Shown: positions 31,501-61,768, counted from the stretch's first letter. The stretch: DNA of 64,000 bases from Pecten maximus (GCF_902652985.1 NC_047016.1:21824001-21888000); one strand, 5' to 3'. Notes: generated by a model not told the origin, from the letters alone. Made by a program: numbers and translations.

Positions 31501-32239
31501 ATCATTTTTAATGAAACTGATCTCGAATCTTTAATTTTATTCGACACAGTCTGCAAAAATAATAATTTAAAAAAAAAAAACCGTTATTGATTTTGATTTC
31601 TTGTTTTGCTAAATCTTCACTTAAGCAATGATACATGTAGGAATATCTTCTTGTTTCAGGCTGTTAGGAAATAAAACCGCTGTATCAGCCAATTAAAAGC
31701 GACGCTACAGATGGTGACGTCATATTTTACATTAATTATTGACCAAATGAAAACGCTTGTTATAGGCAAGATTAAATTGTATACACTTTGAAACACTTAG
31801 AAAATTTAACTTCACGGGACATGTTTTCACTACAGCAAATTATAACAAATCATACAAACAATAACTTGTGTGGAATGTTTTTTAATGCAGATACAGTAAA
31901 GATGAGTATCAGATATCCTGTTTCTATAATTCTGTCAAATCTATGGACATTCATGTACTTACAATGTGCTTGTACACGTATACTTTTTAACATTTTGATA
32001 TCGATATGGGGTATTGACTCGTAGGTAAAATACACGTTTATGTAGACATGTACTATTGTACTTGTCACTTCCAGCTACTCAAAGGACTGTATTCCATACA
32101 TTTACTGTGACCAGTATACAATGTATATACGGACCACTGATTAGAATGACCATGTTCGGTTGCAGGATGAAAAAAAAGAAACTAATCTTTAATGTGAAAT
32201 GGTGAATCACAGATACGACACCTGAAATGAACTTATCAG

Positions 32240-34060
32240 AGCTACCGAGAGACTGTCCCACACAGCTACCGAGAGACTGTCCCACAGAGCTACCGAGAGG
32301 CTGTCTCACAGAGCTACAGAGAGGCTGTCTCATAGAGCTATCGAGAGGCTGTCCCACAGAGCTACCGAGAGCCTGTCCCATAGAGCTATCGAGAGGCTGT
32401 CTCACAGAGTTACAGAGAGGCTGTCTCACAAAGTCACCGAGAGGCTGTCTCACAGAGCTACAGAGAGGCTGTCCCACACAGCTACAGAGAGGCTGTCTCA
32501 CAGAGCTACCGAGAGCCTGTCCCATAGAGCTATCGAGAGGCTGTCTCACAGAGTTACAGAGAGGCTGTCTCACAAAGTCACCGAGAGGCTGTCTCACAGA
32601 GCTACCGAGAGGCTGTCTCACACAGCTACAGAGAGGCTGTCTCACAGAGCTACAGAGAGGCTGTCTCACACAGCTACAGAGAGGCTGTCCCACAGAGCTA
32701 CAGAGAGGCTGTCTCACACAGCTACCGAGAGGCTGTCTCACACAGCTACAGAGAGGCTGTCCCACAGAGCTACCGAGAGGCTGTCTCACAGAGTCACCGA
32801 GAGGCTGTCTCACACAGCTACAGAGAGGCTGTCCCACAGAGCTACAGAGAGGCTGTCTCACACAGCTATCGAGAGGCTGTCTCACACAGCTACAGAGAGG
32901 CTGTCCCACAGAGCTACAGAGAGGCTGTCTCACAGAGCTACCGAGAGGCTGTCTCACAGAGTCACCGAGAGGCTGTCTCACAAAGTCACCGAGAGGCTGT
33001 CTCACACAGCTACCGAGAGGCTGTCTCACACAGCTACAGAGAGGCTGTCCCACAGAGCTACCGAGAGGCTGTCTCACAGAGTCACCGAGAGGCTGTCTCA
33101 CAGAGCTACAGAGAGGCTGTCCCACAGAGCTATCGAGAGGCTATCTCACAGAGTCACCGAGAGGCTGTCTCACAGAGTCACCGAGAGGCTGTCCCACAGA
33201 GCTATTGAGAGGCTGTCCCACAGAGCTACCGAGAGGCTGTCTCACAGAGCTACAGAGAGGCTGTCCCACAGAGCTATCGAGAGGCTATCTCACAGAGTCA
33301 CCGAGAGGCTGTCCCACAGAGCTATTGAGAGGCTGTCCCACAGAGTCACCGAGAGGCTGTCTCACAGAGCTACAGAGAGGCTGTCTCGCACAGCTACAGA
33401 GAGGCTGTCCCACAGAGCTATCGAGAGGCTATCTCACAGAGTCACCGAGAGGCTGTCTCACAGAGTCACCGAGAGGCTGTCTCACAGAGCTACAGAGAGG
33501 CTGTCTCGCACAGCTACAGAGAGGCTGTCCCACAGAGCTACCGAGAGGCTGTCCCACAGATCTACCGAGAGGCTGTCTCATAGAGCTATCGAGAGGCTGT
33601 CTCACAGAGCTACCGAGAGGCTGTCTCACAGAGCTACAGAGAGGTTGTCTCACACAGCTACCGAGAGGCTGTCTCACAGAGCTACCGAGAGCCTGTCCCA
33701 CAGAGCTATCGAGAGGCTGTCTCACACAGCTACAGAGAGGCTGTCTCACAGAGCTACCGAGAGGCTGTCCCACAGAGCTACAGAGAGGCTGTCTCACAGA
33801 GCTACAGAGAGGCTGTCTCACAGAGCTATCGAGAGGCTGTCCCACAGAGCTATCGAGAGGCTGTCCCACAGAGCTATCGAGAGGCTGTCTCACAGAGCTA
33901 CCGAGAGGCTGTCTCACAGAGCTACAGAGAGGCTGTCTCACAGAGCTACAGAGAGGCTGTCTCACAGAGCTATCGAGAGGCTGTCCCACAGAGCTATCGA
34001 GAGGCTGTCCCACAGAGATATCGAGAGGCTGTCCCACAGAGCTACCGAGGGCTGTCTCAC
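32240..34060. repeat. 24-bp minisatellite, ~76 copies
   Basis: Unit cacagagctaccgagaggctgtct with recurring variants. It produces spurious ORFs on both strands. Confidence 0.97.
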
Positions 34061-49605: not shown

Positions 49606-49955
49606 GTAATAGTTAAATAGGAAAATTAAACATTTCCGTATTTTACACCTGTGGCAACGAAGACGCTCTTGAGCTTAACACCCGGGCGCCGCAATTTGCT
49701 GACATGGTAGTGATGTAGAAATTACCAGAGTTGGCCTTTTGATGGTTTTTATTTATGTATTTTTTGCATTTATGCAACTCGTTACAATTCATTCACGGAC
49801 ATGCCTCTTTAAAGGGTCCGAATTTGTGCTTGTCAATCTGTCATCCGTTTTTGTTATGATCTATTTATAAAACTGCTCGAACCTGGTAGAGAGCTCCCCA
49901 TGGAGTGAAATCTCCAGCCTGGACCGATCACAAGAAACGTGTTTTATAGGCCTAC

Positions 49956-50559
49956 CACAGGTCCTAGCCTCGTCTGTCAATACACCCAATATATAATCAA
50001 GGTCAATAACTCGATCGGCATAGATAACCCACCTAATTTCAGGAAAATTGTAATTGTAGACAAACCATCGAAGATGTGCCGCTGGTAATGGTCTCAATCG
50101 ACAGACAAATGTCCCCCCTTTAATTTGGTATATAATTCACTATATATATAGTCATAGAACTATCACTAGACGTCACAAAACATCGAAAATTAGTCAGATT
50201 TTATTTAGTCGGACACTCATCTGTCCAGCGAATAACACGAAATGTCTCTAGAGAGTAGCTTCAACAGTACCGCATGTCAGCACTCCAGTCTCTAAACGAT
50301 GAAACTTAGGCAGGAAACAAACTTACTTGCACATGTGTTCCTATCTAAAAATTACCCTGTTGCTCGCCTCTGGCTTTTGTTGATAACGCATCGCTGATTT
50401 TATGCCTGAAGCCGCCATGTTTTCCGCTGTGTAAGAAGTTGTTATCTCAACGCTGATTGGTTCGTTATTTTCAGGTAATTCGACCTTCACATTCGCTAAT
50501 TCTCTCGAAACTCTCGGGGTTTTTCATATCACAATCGCTAAACGGAAATCGTATCCGAA
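49956..50559 (+). repeat. Left TIR (604 bp)
   Basis: Reverse complement of 60463-61066. Confidence 0.95.
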
Positions 50560-51629
50560 CAATGTAATTGGCGGACTTTTCGAATGGTGTTATTTAGCGG
50601 AATTTTTTTAGCAGACGAACTTTAAGGATGGCAGTTGTCACTTGGTAATTCTTAATTATTTATGGAAACCATTATATCATAGGCATGAGACAGTTAAGAA
50701 TTTTCAGATATTAATCATGAGTTAAAAATTATATTACAGACAAAAAATATATGACTATATGTCTTTGATTGATTACATATAGATGCATCATTACTATGTT
50801 ACTTAATAGCAAACTTAATTAAAGGGCCGATGGGAATTGTTTAGACCTATGACAGGCCATAGCTATCATAGTGATTTTTTATGTATATTTTAAATTTTTA
50901 GTAATTAACTGGTGTTATTTATTTGATAATAGCACAGCATGTTTTATGCAAATTATGGTTCAGCAGTTTAATTTTATCTGAACTTAAAATTGAAAACAAG
51001 ATCTGTCGGAGGACCGCATCTTTTAGTTAGACTCATGAACATGAGGAGATAGTCTATTCCCTCATGGGGACCATAATACCAAATATAAACACAACTAGAA
51101 AATAGTCTGCAAGATATGTAAGCCGCAATGTGAAAACAAGTCATGTGACAACCATTGTTGAACATGTACAGATCATGTGACTTATGAAGATTGTCCAGCT
51201 GATTTATGTGACACACCATAAGCTTGATCAACATATATACAGTACTAGTTATGAGACATCCATTGATCAACAGCTTACACCAAAACTGTAACATTTGAAA
51301 CAATATATATAATATTATTGCAATGAGAAATAAAACCCATCCAATGATAAAATTCAACAAGAGCAGGAGGTACATTATGAAACTGTAAATACCAGCAGCA
51401 ATACAGAACAAATAATAAAATGGAAAAAAAATTAAAGATTGATTGAATGTTCAATATGAAAATATACATAGTGTTAGTGTAAATCAGACATATTACATAC
51501 CATTTAAGAAGTATGACACTAGCTACACCATATTGCATCTCTAGATCTATTAAACACAAGAAGTGAGTGTACATGCATGTGAAACTATCTACTTACAATG
51601 AGGAAGTATACCACAGCTCTTTCATTACA

Positions 51630-52260
51630 CACTGAAGAAATGTGGCACTGTTCCTCCATTACACACATTATAAGTGTGGCACTGTCCCTCCATTACACAC
51701 ACTGAAGAAGTGTGGCACTGTTCCTCCATTACACACATTATAAGTGTGGCACTGTTCCTCCATTACACACATTATAAGTGTGGCACTGTCCCTCCATTAC
51801 ACACACTGAAGAAGTGTGGCACTGTTCCTCCATTACACACATTATAAGTGTGGCACTGTCCCTCCATTACACACACTAGAAGTGTGGCACTGTTCCTCCA
51901 TTACACACACTGAAGAAGCGTGGCACTGTTCCTCCATTACACACACTAGAAGTGTGTTCCTCCATTACACACACTAGAAGTGTGGCACTGTTCCTCCATT
52001 ACACACACTGAAGAAGTGTGGCACTGTTCCTCCATTACACACATTATAAGTGTGGCACTGTTCCTCCATTACACACATTATAAGTGTGGCACTGTCCCTC
52101 CATTACACACACTGAAGAAGTGTGGCACTGTTCCTCCATTACACACACTAGAAGTGTGGCACTGTTCCTCCATTACACACACTAGAAGTGTGATACTGTT
52201 CCTTTATTACACACACTAGAAGTGTGTTCCTCCATTACACACACTGAGAAAGTGTGACAC
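51630..52260. repeat. ~33-36-bp minisatellite inside the P element (~18 copies)
   Basis: Unit aagtgtggcactgttcctccattacacac(attat/actgaag/actag). Confidence 0.93.
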
Positions 52261-52355
52261 TATATATATATATATATCACACACAATTTGGAATCCAGAA
52301 AAATATGTTTGATTTGTTATGAAATAATGGTAGTTTTAACATTTCTAAATCTAAT

Positions 52356-54225
52356 TTATTGACAGTCATTACAGAAAAACCTTACTCCTTCTTGTCTTGC
52401 ATTGTCCCACTTTTTTTTTGAACGAAGCCCTGCACAGTTCCTGTGTAGCCATTTAGAGCAGCTTTCACAGTATATCCAATACAATACACTACCAACTTTA
52501 TTGCAAACTTTGCAGACTTCCTCTTCTTCAGGATCTTTTTGAAGCATTGCTTCACCCTCTTCAGTCGAGGTACCTTTAGGTTCTTTCTGAGTGTCCTCAA
52601 AAGAATCTGCTGCAGAACTTGGTCCTGGTTGAGGTTCTGAAAGAGTAGTTGTCTCTGCCATCTTGGATTCTGTGTCATGGTGAATGACGTTTGGATTTGG
52701 CATGGCATTACTGGCGAGTATCCTTGCTTTCAAGTCCTGCATTAATTTTGCTTTTGTATAAACCCTTGATACCTTCAGAGAGTATGCCTTGCATAATGTT
52801 TGGAGGTTGGTCTTGGTAAATGACTTCAAAACATCTTTCTGTTGGAGAAGTAAACCTTTCAGTAAATTGTGTGACATATCTTTACCTATGGAGTTATCTT
52901 TACTGATACTATCAAAGCTGACTGTTCCCTGAATATCACTTTGTTTTGATTTCTTGATCAAAATTTGCTTTCTGTGAGCTAATGTTTTCTCCACTGAAAA
53001 TGCTTGAAGCAGGTCTTTCCTAAATTGATTAAGCATCACCATGACAAACTTCTCAACAATATCCTTGTAAATACACTCGGTCACAGAGACTTCCAATGTG
53101 AGTTTATTGAGAATGTCTTCAACGACTGATGAACCCACATCACATGTATTTTCATACAAAGAAAAACTTTTCATAGGCACTGTCTTGACAACTTTCAGAA
53201 ACTGTTCGTAAAGTTGAATATTCCCCATGATTACATTAAAGCATTGACTGTGGAGATGTTGACCGTGTTGATGGAGATGTTGATCAGTCAGGTTTGTAAG
53301 ACAATGTTCACACAGCTTCATGAAAAATAAGAATAGTTCATCTCTGATCTGAGTTAACCCCCTGCTTACATTTTGTTTCCTGATGACATCAACCAATGTT
53401 TCAGGAAGAGCAGAATGTTTTTCCAACACAACCTCATTCTCCCTTAAAGCATCAAGTATGTTGATTGCCATTGTTGATTCCTCATACTGTTGCTGGTCTT
53501 CAATGCTGACTTTGGTTGCTCTTGTCTTCTGAAGCTGCAGATTGCGATATCTGACCTTACTGATACAATACCCACCAACATAACGGATCCTCGCTTTTGA
53601 TGCACTGGTCACAAACCTCTGGTAAGTGGATTTCTTGGTTGTCTGGAAGAGGTCAACCTTCTCCTGAAGCAAGAACTTCCTTACCTCCACTGCCAACTTG
53701 TAGCAGATGTGGGCTTGGGCATCAGAATGTATGGGCAGGTCTTGAAACAGTATCATGGTAGTCAAGAGGTATTCCTGGCTTGTTTGATGCCGATTGCATT
53801 TTTCATAAAAATGACAAAGAGCCTCAGACTTTACTGGACCAGAGGCAGTGACGTTGAGGTCTTCCATAAATGCAGACAAAACTAAGAATTGTTTTTTGCA
53901 GAAGTCTGCAACCCTCTCAACATGAAACTTCAGCAAATGGTCAATCAATTCATTTGATTCCGTTTGTATAGCTGTGGCTTCATGCTTTGATCGCATTGTT
54001 TGAAGGAGAGCCCCTGGGTCAAATGAAGCCGGCAAAGTATACTCAGATAGTTCATCAGTTGAGAATACACTGTCAGATACAATGATTTTGTTGAAGTCAT
54101 CATCAAAAGTATCTTCATCTTCCTCTTCTGTTTCTGCTTCACCTTCACATCCGAGATTCCCATCAACAATGAAATCGTCGTCGTCATCTGGCCCAAATAT
54201 GGTCTGCCAATCCATGGACACCTGT
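52356..54225 (-). CDS. PHD-finger-containing exon; predicted last exon of the PIF1-PHD fusion gene
   Basis: 621-aa open frame preceded by acceptor aatttttcag. C-terminal C4HC3 PHD: CKVC...WIYCESCSKWLHRNCAGL...FFCNDC. Acidic N-terminal part. Confidence 0.85.
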
Positions 54226-54878
54226 CTGAAAAATTAAAAACAATAAAAATTGGTGATAATTATTATAAATGTTACAGTAAATGTCTGACTCCCCCAGGCC
54301 TACCAGCTGAACATTTTCCATTAAAATCTCTTAACAAAAATGCATTAAATCCTTGTTTATGGATAATGTATGATGAAAGAAATGACCTTGCACCATTTTG
54401 AAGGTTACAGGGGTATATATGTTTAAAAAAAATAACATTTCTATATATAAACCAAAAGTTATGTTTAAGTTCATACAAACTTTTATCATTTCTTTATTCA
54501 ACTTCAATATCAACAAACTTTATTAACACAGAAAGAAAGTCAATAGGATAGCCTATCTAAGTCTTCTCCTTAGTAACAACAGGTGGTAAGAAATACAGAC
54601 AAATATAATGTATATGTACACATTGATATGACAAATTAACTTACATATATATATATACAATTGAAATCAAATATATCGGGGATAGATAACACATTATATA
54701 CAGTCTCGAATATGTCATGACGTTTATTTGTGTGTATATATATTTGTGTGAAGGAGTTAAGGTGTGTATGATATAAATATAAAGTAAACATAAAAAGACC
54801 AACAGTACAAATGTGTTTACAGTTTGTAGGTTATTATTAAAGGCTTATTAACTAAATTGCTTATCTTTCTAATTTCAG

Positions 54879-57237
54879 GATGTTTTCAAGATTGATAGAA
54901 GAAGGCACTGTATCGGCAAATGTTTTGTTTGAGACATATCGCTTGGAAATAACGGATCTTGGCTATAAAGAAACTGATGTTACATCTCCACAACTGTTTT
55001 CTCAATATGTTACACAGTTGTACCCCAATGTTAAGAAAACAAGACAACATATTGGATCTTTGAAACAAACTATTTATATTGGACTATCATTATCTACCAA
55101 CTCTTTCCAAAGGGATAGAAAAATAACACCAGAAGAACTAGTAACTAACCTACCACTTGGTTTTATATTGACTAAAAAAACAGAACAAAAAATTCAATGG
55201 TCATATCCAACACCTCACATTTCAAATGGAAACACTGTCTATAAAGATATAACTTTCAATAAAGACGGAAGCTGGCAGATGGTCATTGGGACGAAAGACA
55301 TTGATTTGAAAAGCATTGGAATAGATAATAGTTTCATTGGTGATTTAGATTTGGTCTGTAAACAGGTGACTTCAATTAGACTGTGTGAAGGAATCGCTAT
55401 TGACAAAAATATAGTATGTAGTCGTTTCCACATCCTTGATGCATGGCAAGACAGTGATGGCAAATGCGAGAAACATTTAAGATCAATTAACTGTGTCAAA
55501 GTAATTGGATTCATTCACAGATCTCAAGTGTGTAGAGTATGCCAAAAAATGACATTTGGGTCACAAACAGAGAATACCACACAAGAAAATTCAAGTCCTC
55601 AACTTACTCTTACTCTTAGGGAGCAATTTCAAAAGTTAATTCCAAATGCACCAGAAAACATGCTTGAACTTTTAATAAGTCAAGCCAATAACTGTGGAAA
55701 GGATGCCCGTGGTAGAAGATGGAGTCAAGTATTGATTTCAATTTGCCTTCAACTCTTCACAAGAAGTCCAAGTGGTATCTGTATGTTAAGAAACAGTGGC
55801 ATATTAATGCTTCCATCACCTTCCCTACTGATTTTGTATAAAAACAATGTGAAGCATGAAGTAGGGTTCAAAGAGGAGATATTTCATTGGATGTATAGTG
55901 AGGCAAAGCGGCTAAATATTTCTTCCGCTGGTATGATTGGTGGTGTTATACTAGACGAGATGGCTATACAGAGTGACATTCAGATAACCAAGAATGGTGA
56001 CGTCGTGGAACTCCTTGGATTTACTGACCTAGGTCAAGAAGGAAACATGTGTGAGGTCCTCAAATCAGGCAAGAAAGAAAAGACATTAGGAACTCATGTA
56101 CTTCAGCTGATTTTTCTGGGTGTAACAGGATTTCGCTTCCCTTTTGCACATTTTTTATCAACGACAGTACAAGCAGCACAGCTTCATGTTTTATTTTGGG
56201 ATGCTGTGGATTGGCTAGGAATGTATGGGTTCCAAGTTGCCTATACTTGCATGGATGGAGCACCATGCAACAGATCCTTCATGCATATAAACTTGCAGCA
56301 TCGCCTGGTTGAGGAATCTGTATGTGTTCCTAGTCCATGTAGATTCAATACATCGGTTATTTTTATGATGGATTTCTCTCATTCTATCAAGAAAATCAGA
56401 AATAATATCATGAAAAGTGGAGTTTCAAAGGAGTCAACAAGATTATTGACACTTCAAGATGGTACCCAAATTCAATGGCAGATGTGGATAGAGTGCTACA
56501 GATGGGACCAACAAAATGGCCTCTCTCTCCACAGAAGTCTAACAAATGAACACATCTTTCCAAGTTCACAAATGAAAATGAGAAACCACCTCGCTGAAGA
56601 AGTGCTGAACAATGAAATGCTTCATCTCTTTCTTCAGTACCAAGCATCTCTTGGCAAGAAAGGAGAAGTGTTGAACGGGGCTATTCAGCTTATTCGACAA
56701 ACGTCTAAGCTGATAAGTATATTTCGGGATAGAAGACCAATTCAAACCAACGATGATGAGAGACTTAAAGTACTGCAAGAAGCTCTAAGCTGGTTTATTG
56801 ACTGGAAATCTACAATAACATCAGATTCGTCATTGTCAAAACAGGTCAAGGCACATATGCTAATGTCTTCACAATGTATAGAAGATTTGCAGGCATGTGT
56901 AATTGGATTTGTAGAACTTTGTTCTAAGCTTACATCAGGCAGTGACTCAATATCTATAACACCATGTTTAGTCAATTCAGATGCTATAGAAAATGAGTTT
57001 AATCAGCAGAGATCAACATTCAATGGTGCAAACACAAACCCAAATGCCCTTCAATACCGAAGAACACTGAATAATATCATACTTGGTCAAAATATTGTAT
57101 CTACGAAAGCAAATGCTGGCAAAAACAATGCTGCTTTATCATACGCGTTCCAAAATCCAAATCCCTTGAAGACCCAAAAAAGGAAAATCCAGGACAAGCC
57201 AGCTGATTCACAGAAAATTAAAATCATCAGAATGTAA
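54879..57237 (+). CDS. P-element/THAP9-family DDE transposase (785-aa exon; short upstream exon likely)
   Basis: Uninterrupted ORF with LPSPSLL, ILDEMAI (D1), CMDGAPCN (D2), MDFSHSIKKIRNN (DxxH..K.IRN), QMKMRNHLA, NSDAIENEFNQQRS..GANTNPNALQY (E). Preceded by acceptor ctaatttcag. Confidence 0.9.
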
Positions 57238-57602
57238 TTATTTTGATGTGTGAATGGTGTATATTTGACGATTTTGTATCATCAGATGTGCAGTGCAACA
57301 CTAACGTGAAATACTTTTTTTTAATAATTTTTCTGAAGTCCTGTTAACAGCCATGGTCATTTCAGTACTCGCCTGGTTTGGAGATGCAGGAATGCCAGAG
57401 TACCCAGAGAAAAACCACTGAACATTGAACATTGAACCAAGTATGTGTTGAACTCACAACCCAAAGATGTATGGCTAGTGATAAAGTGTCGGGATATTTC
57501 AATGGACCACAAAGGCCCAAAAATAATGTGAAATTAATATGGTAGTGTGTATCAGTGACAGTGTAATGGATGTAAATATAATATCTATGGCAATTTGAAT
57601 AC

Positions 57603-60199
57603 CTGATAGCATTACAGCAGTGTAGACTGTCATCAAGTTCTCGAGACGGTGTGTCAATGAAGGTCTGGACGATATCTGGCTGCTGAATACAAACACTCGG
57701 ATTGAAATTCAGGATACGAAGCCCAGCCGCACTCCTAACTCTTCCCATGGCAACGCCTAGCTGACCAGCTTTAAATATGTTGCGACAGTCAACTTCTACT
57801 CTGAAATAAGAATTTTTATAAAGTGTGTAAAGTTTAACTGACTATTATATCATATTCAATGATGTTTACATTGTACTTATAACAAGCACTTTATAGCAGG
57901 TGCATGTAGTCCAAAACATTATAATACAGACATTTTTCTACGCAATGTTTAGCAACATTATCTTGGAAAAATATCAATTTAATCCAACATAAATCAACTA
58001 ATAGTTACAAATATATTTACTTAACATATATATGCATGACACCATGAGACAAGTCAAATGAAATTAATCAAATTATTCTATTTCATTCAAGTGAGTACTT
58101 AAAGAAAACTACAAGATTTATGATGTAAAAATAAAAAAATTAGTTACAGAAAAAAAAAGATTAGCATTGTTATGTAATACATGCCTACATATGTTTATTT
58201 ATATGTATATATATGTAAGCAATAAGTATACATGTGTGAATGAATATGAGCCTTTGTGAATGTTGTGAATGAATATGAGCCTTTGTGAATGTATGTATGT
58301 TTGTTTGTATGTATGTAATATTTTCTCCTTATATCTGATTGAACTCTCTTTATTATTACTTCGAAATCCTTTTCTTTATCTTCTTCTTTATCCTTTCTAC
58401 GTTTTATTCTAATAAAAAACTTCTCCTAATATAGATCAATTACATCCTTCTGCATTTAATCTTTCTTGTGTATTGCAATACTATATAATACATATCTTTC
58501 TATTTCTCATTGTTTCTTCTCTTTTACAACAATCAGATAACCAGATTTCTTGGAAAGGACCACTATAGGCTTAGCCTGTTGTCTAATCCATTTATTTATA
58601 TAACTTTATTTAAATGTATAAACACTAATTACTTGATATAAAATATTTTGAAATGAAATGAGATCACTTTTTTTTCCTTTTCTTTAGAACATATAATACC
58701 TATCCAGAGTCATTCCTTGGGCCTTGTGGATACTCAGGGCAAAGGCAAGCTTCAATGGGTACTGCATCCTTTCTGCCACATTCTTTCCAATGACAGGACT
58801 AAATACTAAATGAACATAAATACATGCAATGTATGTGTAATCAATATCATTATAATGTATGTACATTGTAATCATTATAAGTACTGTGAACTGTGTCATC
58901 AATACATTTGGGCTTTCAGTAATATTTGTTTCCCAAACTAGATTCAATAGAACTTGGGCATTGTTGTATTGACAGATTGTGTGTAAATAGATTGGGCTAT
59001 TTATAAGTAAAACAGAATAACTGAGTAGTTATTTAATTATGGATAATCTATATATACATGATAACATACATTATTTTGTAATGATTAATTATTAATAATT
59101 AAGCAATTATGATCATTCTATCATCAAATTAAAACCCATGTATACAAGTGTTTTAGTACATATGAATAACTGTTATCAAGATCATATGAATTTCATTTGA
59201 CATCTCAACTTTAAGCATCTTATATTTACCTGTGAACTTAATTTTTGTTATCCTATGTACACCTAATGATCCGAAGTCCACTACAGGTCCATCTTTCCCC
59301 AGTGAAACAATATATCCCTGCAATCCATTGTAAAGAACTTTGGAAAAATTGCGAAGGAGCACAACTGGACAACCTTCCTTCAACCAAAGTTTTTGTGGAG
59401 CCAGTATCTTTGAGAGATGTTTTTTATCCCCAGTATCAACTGCAGAGTACTCAATCAACTCTCCCCTCCAGTTCAAAATACGCCTTCTGTTATAGTCATC
59501 CACAAGGTTATTAGTAGCAAACAACTTAACAGAAGGAGGCCCTGTTGGTAATGGCCTCTCCATAGAGTTAATAAGGGTTAATGATTCTTCTGTCAGTTCA
59601 ACCCCTTCACTGACCTCTTGGATGGCTTTAATAAGGGTCTGGTCTTGTTGCCTGATTATGTCACATAATATAACACGATGAGGAACAGCAGTTTGAAATA
59701 GTTCTGACTGAAAGCAGAAGTTACCTTCATCATTGTATTGTACATTAGGAACAGGTGGGAGTTGTCTGAAATCGCCACAGAGTATAAGTTGTATACCACC
59801 AAAGATAGCATCTGGATTTTTCAGGCTGCATACTTCCTCCAGTTGCTGAAAAAGCTTATCTGAAAGCATGCTTATTTCATCTATTATTAGTGTGTCAGCC
59901 TTCATCAATCGTTCTAAAGTGTCTCTGTGTTTGGGGGTTTCCTTGATCAATGTAGCAATTTCTTTGGATGAATATCGACCGTCATCTATGCCAGCCCATC
60001 TGTGAATTGTCATCGCATTGCTAAAATTTGCACAAGCTATCCCTGTTGTACACGTGATATGAACACTTTTGTCTGCTTTACGGAGTCCGTTTTCTATTTC
60101 TGAAATCAGAAAGGACTTGCCAGTTCCCGCTGATCCACCTATGTATAAATTGTGGACTGCGATGGCAATATCATAGGCTTCCTTCTGTTTTAAATTCAT
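57603..60199 (-). CDS. PIF1-family (SF1B) DNA helicase, coding exons 60199-59230, 58805-58700, 57800-57603
   Basis: GSAGTGKS (I), TCTTGIAC (Ia), TIHRWAGI, LIIDEISML (II), FGGIQLILCGDFRQLPPV (III), IRQQD (IV), LKEGCPVVLLRN, QYPLKLAFALSIHKAQGMTLD (V), GQLGVAMGRVRS (VI-like). Splice sites are GT-AG and phase-consistent. Confidence 0.92.
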
Positions 60200-60462
60200 T
60201 TTTGAGAACAGTGTGCATGTCACAGTACAAATCTATATACATTGTATTTAGATCACGGACAGTAGATGCACCGTGCTACTAAAAGGTGTTTTTACGATGC
60301 ATCTTACCTTTTCCACTGTAAGGATGCTAACATTTTGTACTTTACATATACAAAGTCATGATTTATGACAAATTATTTCGTATCTGAAGTTGATAAACCT
60401 GTAGAGTGATGGGAAATACAAATCGCACATGCTGCTCTGCTTCTGCTTGTTTGTTGTTATAA

Positions 60463-61066
60463 TTCGGATACGATTTCCGTTTAGCGATTGTGATATGAAA
60501 AACCCCGAGAGTTTCGAGAGAATTAGCGAATGTGAAGGTCGAATTACCTGAAAATAACGAACCAATCAGCGTTGAGATAACAACTTCTTACACAGCGGAA
60601 AACATGGCGGCTTCAGGCATAAAATCAGCGATGCGTTATCAACAAAAGCCAGAGGCGAGCAACAGGGTAATTTTTAGATAGGAACACATGTGCAAGTAAG
60701 TTTGTTTCCTGCCTAAGTTTCATCGTTTAGAGACTGGAGTGCTGACATGCGGTACTGTTGAAGCTACTCTCTAGAGACATTTCGTGTTATTCGCTGGACA
60801 GATGAGTGTCCGACTAAATAAAATCTGACTAATTTTCGATGTTTTGTGACGTCTAGTGATAGTTCTATGACTATATATATAGTGAATTATATACCAAATT
60901 AAAGGGGGGACATTTGTCTGTCGATTGAGACCATTACCAGCGGCACATCTTCGATGGTTTGTCTACAATTACAATTTTCCTGAAATTAGGTGGGTTATCT
61001 ATGCCGATCGAGTTATTGACCTTGATTATATATTGGGTGTATTGACAGACGAGGCTAGGACCTGTG
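60463..61066 (-). repeat. Right TIR (604 bp)
   Basis: Reverse complement of 49956-50559. Confidence 0.95.
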
Positions 61067-61239
61067 GGCCTACAGTTAATTAAATACAATATTTATAATA
61101 TATCCAGTATATGAGTAAAAAGACACTTAACATCTACATCAATTTCACGGGTTTTAGGTTTTTGAAAAATTGTCGAATGTCAACATAAATTTCGTGAGAG
61201 TTTATATAGATCTTTTATACCATCAATGCATGTTGCAAG

Positions 61240-61668: not shown

Positions 61669-61768
61669 ACAGGTGCCTGACTCGTTTTATAAAATAATAA
61701 CATATAGAGTACATATAAATGAGAGTACTCTATATGTTATTATTTTATAAAACGAGTCAGGCACCTGT
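61669..61768. repeat. Perfect foldback: 44-bp arms, 12-nt loop
   Basis: acaggtgcctgactcgttttataaaataataacatatagagtac-atataaatgaga-gtactctatatgttattattttataaaacgagtcaggcacctgt. Confidence 0.9.

Follow-up and report, generated by a model that had tools for sequence, protein, structure and literature searches.

The locus described here raises the question of what a gene joining a PIF1 helicase to a PHD finger is doing inside a cut-and-paste transposon of the P superfamily. The window is a 64,000-nucleotide stretch of the Pecten maximus genome (GCF_902652985.1, NC_047016.1:21824001-21888000, read on one strand), which corresponds to C2:21824001-21888000 in the 918-Mb assembly used for the genome searches, and positions below are counted from its first letter. 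A comparison of repeat arms, read together with their flanks, placed the element at 49956-61066, a sequence of 11,111 bp that is free of N. An inverted-repeat search of the window returned arms at 49955-50559 and 60463-61067 of 605 nt that were 100% complementary, and reading the flanks trimmed these to perfect terminal inverted repeats (TIRs) of 604 bp, CACAGG...CCTGTG. The identical TIRs and the perfect 7-bp target site duplication (TSD) described in a first-pass annotation of the sequence were both confirmed, the latter as GGCCTAC on either flank. The same TIR sequence bounds six further elements in the genome, and the recurrence of these ends with different TSDs excludes a chance origin of the structure. 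The element is likely, as part of the whole explanation developed below, to be a DNA transposon of the P superfamily that is autonomous, was active recently, and has two genes between its long TIRs.

Five of the six further copies are full length (10.9-16.0 kb, on C17, C35, C11, C4, and C1), which brings the genome total to six full-length copies and one deletion derivative. The latter, on C5, is a 4.2-kb copy with an internal deletion that joins window positions ~51121 and ~58065 over a 3-bp microhomology, TAA. Flanking DNA and TSD differ for each of the seven copies, the duplication being 7 bp in the window copy and on C11, C4, and C1, and 8 bp on C17, C35, and C5. Substitutions relative to the window copy number 0-11 per region (0.04-0.6%), and most differences between copies are indels or changes in the unit number of the 34-bp array at 51623-52261. 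The transposase open reading frame (ORF) is intact in five of the six full-length copies, and helicase exon 1 in all seven copies. Older, decayed relatives with a TIR identity of 80-93% are also present, one of which, on C15, agrees with the element in the relative order of helicase and transposase. The family is young and was mobile in the recent past, as the first-pass annotation had supposed, with substitutions among copies of no more than 0.6% and with seven loci that have their own TSDs and mostly intact ORFs; the element is probably still mobile. Public contigs, from runs typed as RNA by guess, cover both genes, and two of these contigs carry splice joints.

Beside these copies, some further observations were made. 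The copy on C17 (16 kb) holds a 4.8-kb insertion at about window position 54652, which adjoins the first of three stretches in non-coding parts of the element (54548-54643, 57344-57498, and 58523-58600) where the contig depth is 10-100 times that of the surroundings and loose contig ends enter unrelated sequence. These stretches probably derive from other, high-copy repeats, pieces of which are embedded in the element. In a run with a second organism label (B), 68% of the sampled words of window 53900-59899 were recovered, which implies a near-identical element under a second species label; this could reflect a close relative or horizontal transfer.

Regarding the first of the two genes, the transposase reported as intact is indeed a 785-aa ORF without stops. 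Full-length homologues of 770-825 aa with 32-56% identity were found in the bivalves Mercenaria, Dreissena, Pinctada, Tegillarca, and Mytilus and in the gastropod Littorina, and their lengths indicate that the gene is a complete single exon. The sole Pfam match of the window transposase was TNP-like_RNaseH_N (PF21787, E 3.6e-12), and PF21788 is on record for several of its homologues. When a profile of 27 homologues was searched, it aligned with the Drosophila P transposase (6p5a_A) at an E of 5e-8 over three collinear blocks, and this alignment sets the catalytic residues D359, D459, and E704, which are invariant in the profile, on D230, D303, and E531 of the fly protein. The AlphaFold model (predicted local distance difference test, pLDDT, 76) retrieved 6pe2_A and 6p5a_A in a Foldseek search (7.5e-18, template modelling score 0.74-0.77), with Hermes at 5e-4. 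In VIA-align, model residues 252-759 were superposed on fly residues 128-569 with a Z of 32.6, and 428 of the 442 residues modelled in fly chain A were aligned, a span within which the GTP-binding insertion domain of the fly enzyme lies; the next fold was Transib with a Z of 10.7. By its fold, catalytic triad, and TSD length, this transposase belongs to the P superfamily. Two of the full-length homologues, P0016 and P0020, are filed as hypothetical proteins of Sedimenticola sp. metagenome-assembled genomes, and are most likely from host (mollusc) contigs mis-binned into bacterial genomes.

The two ends of the protein depart from the fly enzyme. Its domains are, in order, an RFX-type winged helix, a Cys-rich beta domain, a helix-turn-helix (HTH), and a split RNase H with a predicted insertion domain, and Pfam found no THAP domain in it even at E values up to 10. 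Residues 1-73 matched 1dp7_P (Z 10.2, root-mean-square deviation [rmsd] 1.9, 70 of 76 residues aligned) and the RFX5 chain 8zjr_M (Z 9.6), and the 27-homologue profile matched RFX5 with an E of 0.0024. At the other end, approximately 25 structured residues follow the last catalytic helix before a disordered basic tail (the last 50 residues are disordered); the structural match stops at model residue 759, which corresponds to fly residue 569, and the same end point is seen in all 27 homologues. Since the protein ends so soon after this helix, it is without the helical C-terminal domain (CTD; fly residues 617-734), which contacts both transposon DNA and target DNA in the fly complex (PMC7776569). 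The assignment to a P-superfamily lineage in the first-pass annotation therefore stands on the fold (Z 32.6), the DDE triad, and the 7-8-bp TSDs, and needs amendment in that neither a THAP domain nor a P-type CTD is part of the protein.

The second gene was mapped one exon at a time from an NCBI model and homologues, with refinement of the splice sites, and consists of four minus-strand exons separated by three introns, all of which are GT..AG. The exon lengths of 970 + 106 + 198 + 1870 amount to 3144 nt, enough for 1047 codons and a TAA stop without a change of frame; this 1047-aa frame was checked by arithmetic, and protein searches were made with single exons. The minus-strand ORFs concerned are one of 356 aa with the PIF1 domain and one of 621 aa that ends in the PHD finger. 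The transposase ORF lies wholly within intron 3 in antisense orientation; the two genes are nested and not side by side, which the first-pass annotation had not mentioned. Both joints, 57800>58700 and 54225>57603, were recovered from public contigs, whose runs are again typed as RNA by guess, and read CT..AC on the plus strand. NCBI models join the PIF1 part and the exon-4 region in Pecten, Argopecten, Mizuhopecten, Saccostrea, and Littorina, the PHD finger being on record in the Argopecten and Littorina models, and the protein library contains single ORFs in which PIF1, the helical domain of exon 4, and the PHD finger are combined (e.g., P0265, 1156 aa). PIF1 and PHD are one spliced gene; four exons, GT..AG joints, fused models, and single-ORF homologues all agree with the intact spliced gene that had been described. 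In the NCBI model LOC117315301, which represents the C17 copy, the PHD finger is skipped and the last 50 residues are read from the 34-bp array; such an ending probably reflects a mis-prediction, or else an alternative 3' end.

A transposase gene that sits in an intron on the opposite strand is what would be expected if a P element had inserted into a separate helicase element or host gene, the two being merely nested. No second repeat pair or TSD was found around the transposase gene, however, and the outer ends are common to all seven copies; the C5 derivative retains the outer TIRs together with helicase exons. In Tegillarca, a 7,253-bp element (first bases CACAGGTACTTG, 8-bp TSD CATTTCAT) has the transposase and helicase genes side by side between one pair of TIRs of ~560 bp, and all four parts of its helicase-PHD gene adjoin on one strand, un-nested. 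Considering these arrangements, two nested elements are scarcely credible. The first-pass annotation had allowed for a helicase that belonged to a separately inserted element, and this is contradicted by the absence of ends of its own.

Exon 1 matched PF05970 (1.4e-29) and the Pif1 2B domain PF21530 (2.7e-5) in Pfam, all helicase motifs are intact, and the regions of motifs V and VI were located in the translated exons 2 and 3. Exons 1-3 are predicted to encode a complete Pif1-family helicase core of superfamily 1B (SF1B). Among solved structures, exon 1 was matched by cellular PIF1 proteins (yeast, human, and others; 5e-39 to 9e-33, 117-138 bits) and by the Helitron helicase of Helraiser (3e-5, 26.6 bits). 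The Pecten genome itself contains at least 92 matches to the Helitron Rep domain (PF14214), none of which is in a copy of the element, and the Pecten Helitron helicases scored ~38 bits against the element PIF1, with 27-33% identity. Pfam detected no Rep/HUH domain in any ORF of the element, in agreement with what the first-pass annotation had noted. A Helitron fragment was also considered and was ruled out by the lack of a Rep domain, the perfect 604-bp TIRs, and the 7-8-bp TSDs. As a separate observation, many of the Pecten Rep matches belong to reading frames that stay open for 2,500-3,200 aa and suggest large Helitron or Helentron genes that may be intact.

The pairing of the two genes recurs outside Pecten maximus. 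The order exon 4 (minus), transposase (plus), and exons 3-2-1 (minus) was found in Mercenaria (48% transposase identity), in two ENA assemblies (46-47%), and in Littorina (38%), where the deposited annotation has a 994-aa PIF1-PHD gene within whose span the transposase gene falls. The loci with the full gene order are L032, L033, L034, and L044, and partial versions occur in three more loci. The helicase is kept in related elements of four bivalve genera and one gastropod at 33-56% transposase identity, and in most members the transposase gene is antisense in the last intron of the helicase-PHD gene. The Mercenaria element is 16.2 kb long (first bases CACAGGTGGCAG, 8-bp TSD GTTTTTAT) and that of Mytilus 5,037 bp (first bases CACAGGTATTTG, 8-bp TSD with one mismatch); the terminal CACAGGT is common to the Pecten, Mercenaria, Tegillarca, and Mytilus elements, the TIRs of which measure 430-604 bp. 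Within the Pecten genome, 25 diverged loci have a PIF1 match and a transposase match 1-8 kb apart by match coordinates, in convergent orientation in all but one pair. Identities at these loci are 31-86% for PIF1 and 31-80% for the transposase, or 31-44% and 31-48%, respectively, without the decayed C15 relative. Pecten transposase matches at 28-30% identity, in ORFs of ~1000 aa, have no PIF1 match nearby and are taken to be ordinary P elements. By these sequence comparisons, the transposase-helicase pairing is an old, mollusc-wide lineage. At the most distant full-length transposase homologue, P0053 (32%, ENA ERZ26052378), a 763-aa ORF without a Pfam match occupies the position and orientation of PIF1 and may be a different accessory gene. 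Elsewhere in Pecten, at C15:16285665-16293562, five PIF1-like fragments (45-53% identity to exon 1) form a tandem array on one strand, with a spacing of ~1.4-1.7 kb and no transposase match nearby.

These data bear on the possibility that the helicase-PHD gene is no more than a passenger, captured once from the host or a Helitron and carried neutrally since, without use to the element. Transposons do capture host genes, and PIF1-like helicases are abundant in Pecten through its Helitrons, although the bit scores given above set the element PIF1 apart from the helicases of the Pecten Helitrons and Helraiser and close to cellular PIF1. A neutral cargo is also difficult to reconcile with linkage, exon structure, and orientation that are kept at 33-56% identity across bivalves and a gastropod and at 25 Pecten loci, with helicase motifs and ORFs intact. 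In ten linked pairs, the distances of the two proteins correlated (Mantel r 0.61, p 1e-4, 9,999 permutations), and in a 110-row PIF1 tree, one clade (Shimodaira-Hasegawa-like approximate likelihood ratio test 97-100) took in the nine linked PIF1s, without exception, together with every named mollusc row, separate from fungal and protist PIF1s. The 45-70% protein divergence of the linked loci excludes recent horizontal copies of one element. A passenger is, therefore, very improbable. The first-pass annotation had proposed searching mollusc genomes for the linkage and setting co-divergence against capture: the pairing recurs in several genera, the two proteins co-diverge with the linked PIF1s in one clade, and the one-off capture that it had named as the opposing case does not hold.

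The remainder of the helicase protein is encoded by exon 4, for which the AlphaFold2 model (pLDDT 77) comprises an all-helical region (aa 37-515), a disordered linker, and the PHD finger. The finger of the window sequence matched PF00628 with an E of 4.5e-5 and 23.8 bits against a cut-off of 24, and the match was obtained in 17 of 20 homologues. Its profile matched Pygopus (7e-7) and TAF3 (1e-6) in the PDB, and its structure matched 3zpv (Z 7.8, rmsd 1.6). The closest matches are the H3K4me-reading fingers of Pygopus, TAF3, DIDO1, KDM5, and MLL, and two Trp residues stand, by eye, at the positions of the methyl-lysine cage in this putative histone reader. For the helical domain (aa 203-412 of exon 4), the best of 48,161 chains was the CTD of the Drosophila P transposase, 6p5a_B, aligned over 118 of 118 residues (rmsd 2.9, Z 9.4), a match that is notable because the CTD is the very domain absent from the neighboring transposase. 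A Foldseek search with the exon-4 model returned the PHD finger only and no match for the helical part. A profile of the helical domain reached 969 clusters at E values up to 1e-3, and among the long matches examined, ten of ten were PIF1 fusions and none of ten a transposase. We treat the resemblance to the missing CTD, which was obtained with a predicted model, as a lead only and as rather doubtful.

What the helicase protein does may be long gap repair, chromatin targeting, or both. We tentatively favor, at a little short of an even chance, PIF1-driven long-tract gap repair with the PHD finger as a chromatin tether. The transposase would bind the long TIRs through its winged helix, excise the element by P-type cut-and-paste, and insert it with a 7-8-bp staggered target cut, and the helicase protein would act as an accessory transposition factor. 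Excision of a 7-20-kb element would leave a gap, and repair from the sister chromatid would decide the survival of the donor copy. The PIF1 motor could drive long-tract repair synthesis over this 7-20-kb donor-site gap, such that the sister copy restores the full-length element and transposition becomes effectively replicative; an element-encoded PIF1 would thereby raise the yield of full-length copies. The PHD finger may tether the helicase protein to H3K4-methylated chromatin, and the helical domain may dock it on the transpososome, standing in for the missing transposase CTD. In Drosophila, 14-kb P-element gaps are often incompletely repaired, and PIF1 promotes long-range synthesis (10.1101/554550). 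The deletion on C5, joined at a microhomology, resembles the product that might be expected of aborted gap repair.

The same protein may instead serve above all in the architecture and targeting of the transpososome, as part of a split transposase: the helical domain would supply the lost CTD in trans, integration would be directed to H3K4-methylated promoters by the PHD finger, single-stranded transposon ends would be handled by the motor, and gap repair would be secondary. The uniform end of the transposase model and its homologues at the equivalent of fly residue 569, the choice of the fly CTD from all chains compared, the DNA contacts of that domain in the fly complex, the constant fusion of the helical domain to PIF1, and the similarity of the PHD finger to H3K4me readers are consistent with such a division of labor. 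We nevertheless regard it as unlikely in view of the comparisons of the helical domain given in the next paragraph, and hold equally doubtful its corollary, namely, that the lineage moved the DNA-contacting P CTD onto the PIF1-PHD protein and that an active transpososome needs both proteins. Were this the case, a 5'-3' motor and a histone-mark reader at the transposon ends would couple cutting, target choice, and long-tract repair. It is also conceivable that the helicase acts in a copy-out or otherwise replicative step, or counters host silencing, instead of taking part in donor-site repair: PIF1 motors drive strand displacement in Helitrons, nested antisense genes could yield double-stranded RNA in need of management, and a PHD finger could hold the element in active chromatin. 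The element has, however, no nickase or Rep domain, its TSDs and exact TIR ends are of the cut-and-paste type, and nothing in the data bears on silencing, which makes this role quite improbable.

Several points weigh against the whole explanation given here for the element, and those on the helical domain also against a split transposase. The CTD match (Z 9.4) does not rise above the background of helical models, for which the next, unrelated row scored 9.0 and which can reach such values by chance. Pfam, at E values up to 10, gave no CTD match for exon 4 and five homologues; PF12596 had no match in the whole Pecten genome, nor did the helical-domain profile among PDB sequences. A complex prediction for the transposase core and the helical domain scored 0.00, which weighs neither way. 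Some members have lost helicase parts and yet keep good TIRs: the 5-kb Mytilus element retains just the N-terminal half of PIF1, and locus L042 is without helicase exons 1-2, which indicates that the helicase is not required in cis by every copy. The PIF1 tree holds no rows for Helitron or host animal PIF1s. Concerning the transcripts, the RNA type of the runs is a guess, and each joint is carried by a single contig that reaches 23-26 bases beyond it on the shorter side, and thus the contig joints alone are modest evidence. The role of the helicase in transposition is, finally, a putative one.

Features of the Pecten maximus element by window position (a period marks features without strand)
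Feature	Position	Strand	Evidence
Left TSD copy, GGCCTAC, 7 bp	49949..49955	.	Identical 7 bases after right end
Left TIR, 604 bp, first bases CACAGGTCCTAG	49956..50559	+	100% complementary to right arm; bounds six other copies
34-bp tandem repeat array, ~17.6 units, 3' of helicase-PHD stop codon	51623..52261	.	Tandem Repeats Finder
Exon 4, ~622 codons, TAA stop: disordered acidic start, all-helical region, C-terminal PHD finger	52356..54225	-	ORF, joint 54225>57603, homologues
PHD finger, C4HC3, Pygopus/TAF3/DIDO type	52359..52514	-	PF00628, PDB profile, structure match
Helical domain, exon-4 aa 203-412	52989..53618	-	Top structural match 6p5a_B
Intron 3, 3377 nt, GT..AG, contains entire transposase gene on other strand	54226..57602	-	Contig joint skipping it, CT..AC on plus strand
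Transposase gene, single exon, 785 aa	54880..57237	+	Uninterrupted ORF; homologues, profile, AlphaFold model
RFX-type winged-helix DNA-binding domain, aa 1-73, in place of THAP	54880..55098	+	1dp7_P Z 10.2; RFX5 profile match
Exon 3: helicase motif VI region	57603..57800	-	Joints 54225>57603 and 57800>58700
Exon 2: helicase motif V region	58700..58805	-	Homologue mapping, contig joint 57800>58700
Exon 1: PIF1 helicase, Walker A, Walker B (DEISM), Pif1 signature motif, 2B domain	59230..60199	-	PF05970, PF21530
Right TIR, 604 bp	60463..61066	-	100% complementary to left arm
Right TSD copy, GGCCTAC	61067..61073	.	Matches left flank

Outside the element, 600 bp to its right, AT-rich sequence at 61669-61768 forms an inverted repeat with perfect 44-nt arms and a 12-nt spacer, and looks like a small hairpin or a feature similar to a miniature inverted-repeat transposable element. 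The GC content is 0.54 at 32001-34000 and 0.32-0.45 elsewhere in the window.

PIF1-type helicases in eukaryotic transposons are treated as the hallmark of rolling-circle Helitrons. The partner of PIF1 here is a cut-and-paste DDE transposase, and annotation pipelines that equate PIF1 with Helitrons will consequently misfile such mollusc elements. The present family also indicates that membership in the P superfamily requires neither THAP nor a CTD, and makes it possible to study in a natural setting how large DNA transposons are copied faithfully via gap repair. To our knowledge, molluscs are without a large-cargo gene-transfer tool; the family, which looks active, moves 7-20 kb flanked by simple ends, and carries its own motor and chromatin reader, is a candidate for one.

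Among known systems, the Drosophila P element and vertebrate THAP9 resemble the scallop element in the transposase, whose modelled fold agrees from the HTH to the end of the split RNase H and its predicted insertion (Z 32.6) and whose DDE triad aligns; 7-8-bp TSDs, ends starting with CA, and internally deleted derivatives are likewise common to both. They differ from it in that the scallop transposase has an RFX-type winged helix for THAP and no CTD, and that in the mollusc lineage the TIRs are 430-604 bp rather than 13-31 bp and the size 7-20 kb rather than 2.9 kb; the conserved second gene, PIF1-PHD, and the single-exon transposase gene nested antisense in an intron also set it apart. Helitrons and Helentrons, through RepHel, similarly represent eukaryotic transposons that encode a Pif1-like SF1B helicase, whereas in the present element there is no HUH Rep, the helicase is separate from the transposase, TIRs and TSDs are present, and the helicase scores far higher against cellular PIF1 (117-138 bits) than against Helraiser (26.6) or the Pecten Helitrons (~38). 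The Kolobok superfamily targets TTAA, and membership in it was ruled out by the varied 7-8-bp TSDs and by the P transposase as the best fold match. Kolobok lineages carry RecQ helicases and various nucleases, and KolobokH has been reported from fungi only (PMC9587614). KolobokH and Kolobok-1_CCri are comparable to the scallop element in being DDE cut-and-paste lineages defined by a conserved accessory helicase, the gene for which is likewise on the complementary strand in Kolobok-1_CCri (PMC9587614). The Kolobok helicase is, however, a RecQ (SF2, 3'-5') and not a Pif1 (SF1B, 5'-3'), and Kolobok has no PHD finger.

Two-gene cut-and-paste systems are also represented by PIF/Harbinger, with its transposase and Myb-like protein, CACTA, and MuDR, in which, as here, a second element-encoded protein is conserved with the transposase and presumed to have a role in transposition or targeting. 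The accessory proteins of these three are DNA-binding factors, and we know of none with a motor, helicase, or PHD finger. A full-text literature search, with Repbase and Dfam outside its scope, found no description of a P lineage in which a PIF1-PHD partner is combined with an RFX-type DNA-binding domain, TIRs of half a kilobase, a nested antisense gene arrangement, and the lack of a CTD, in line with the first-pass annotation, the author of which was aware of none. Accessory genes as such have been described before in DDE transposons, as in the Kolobok lineages.

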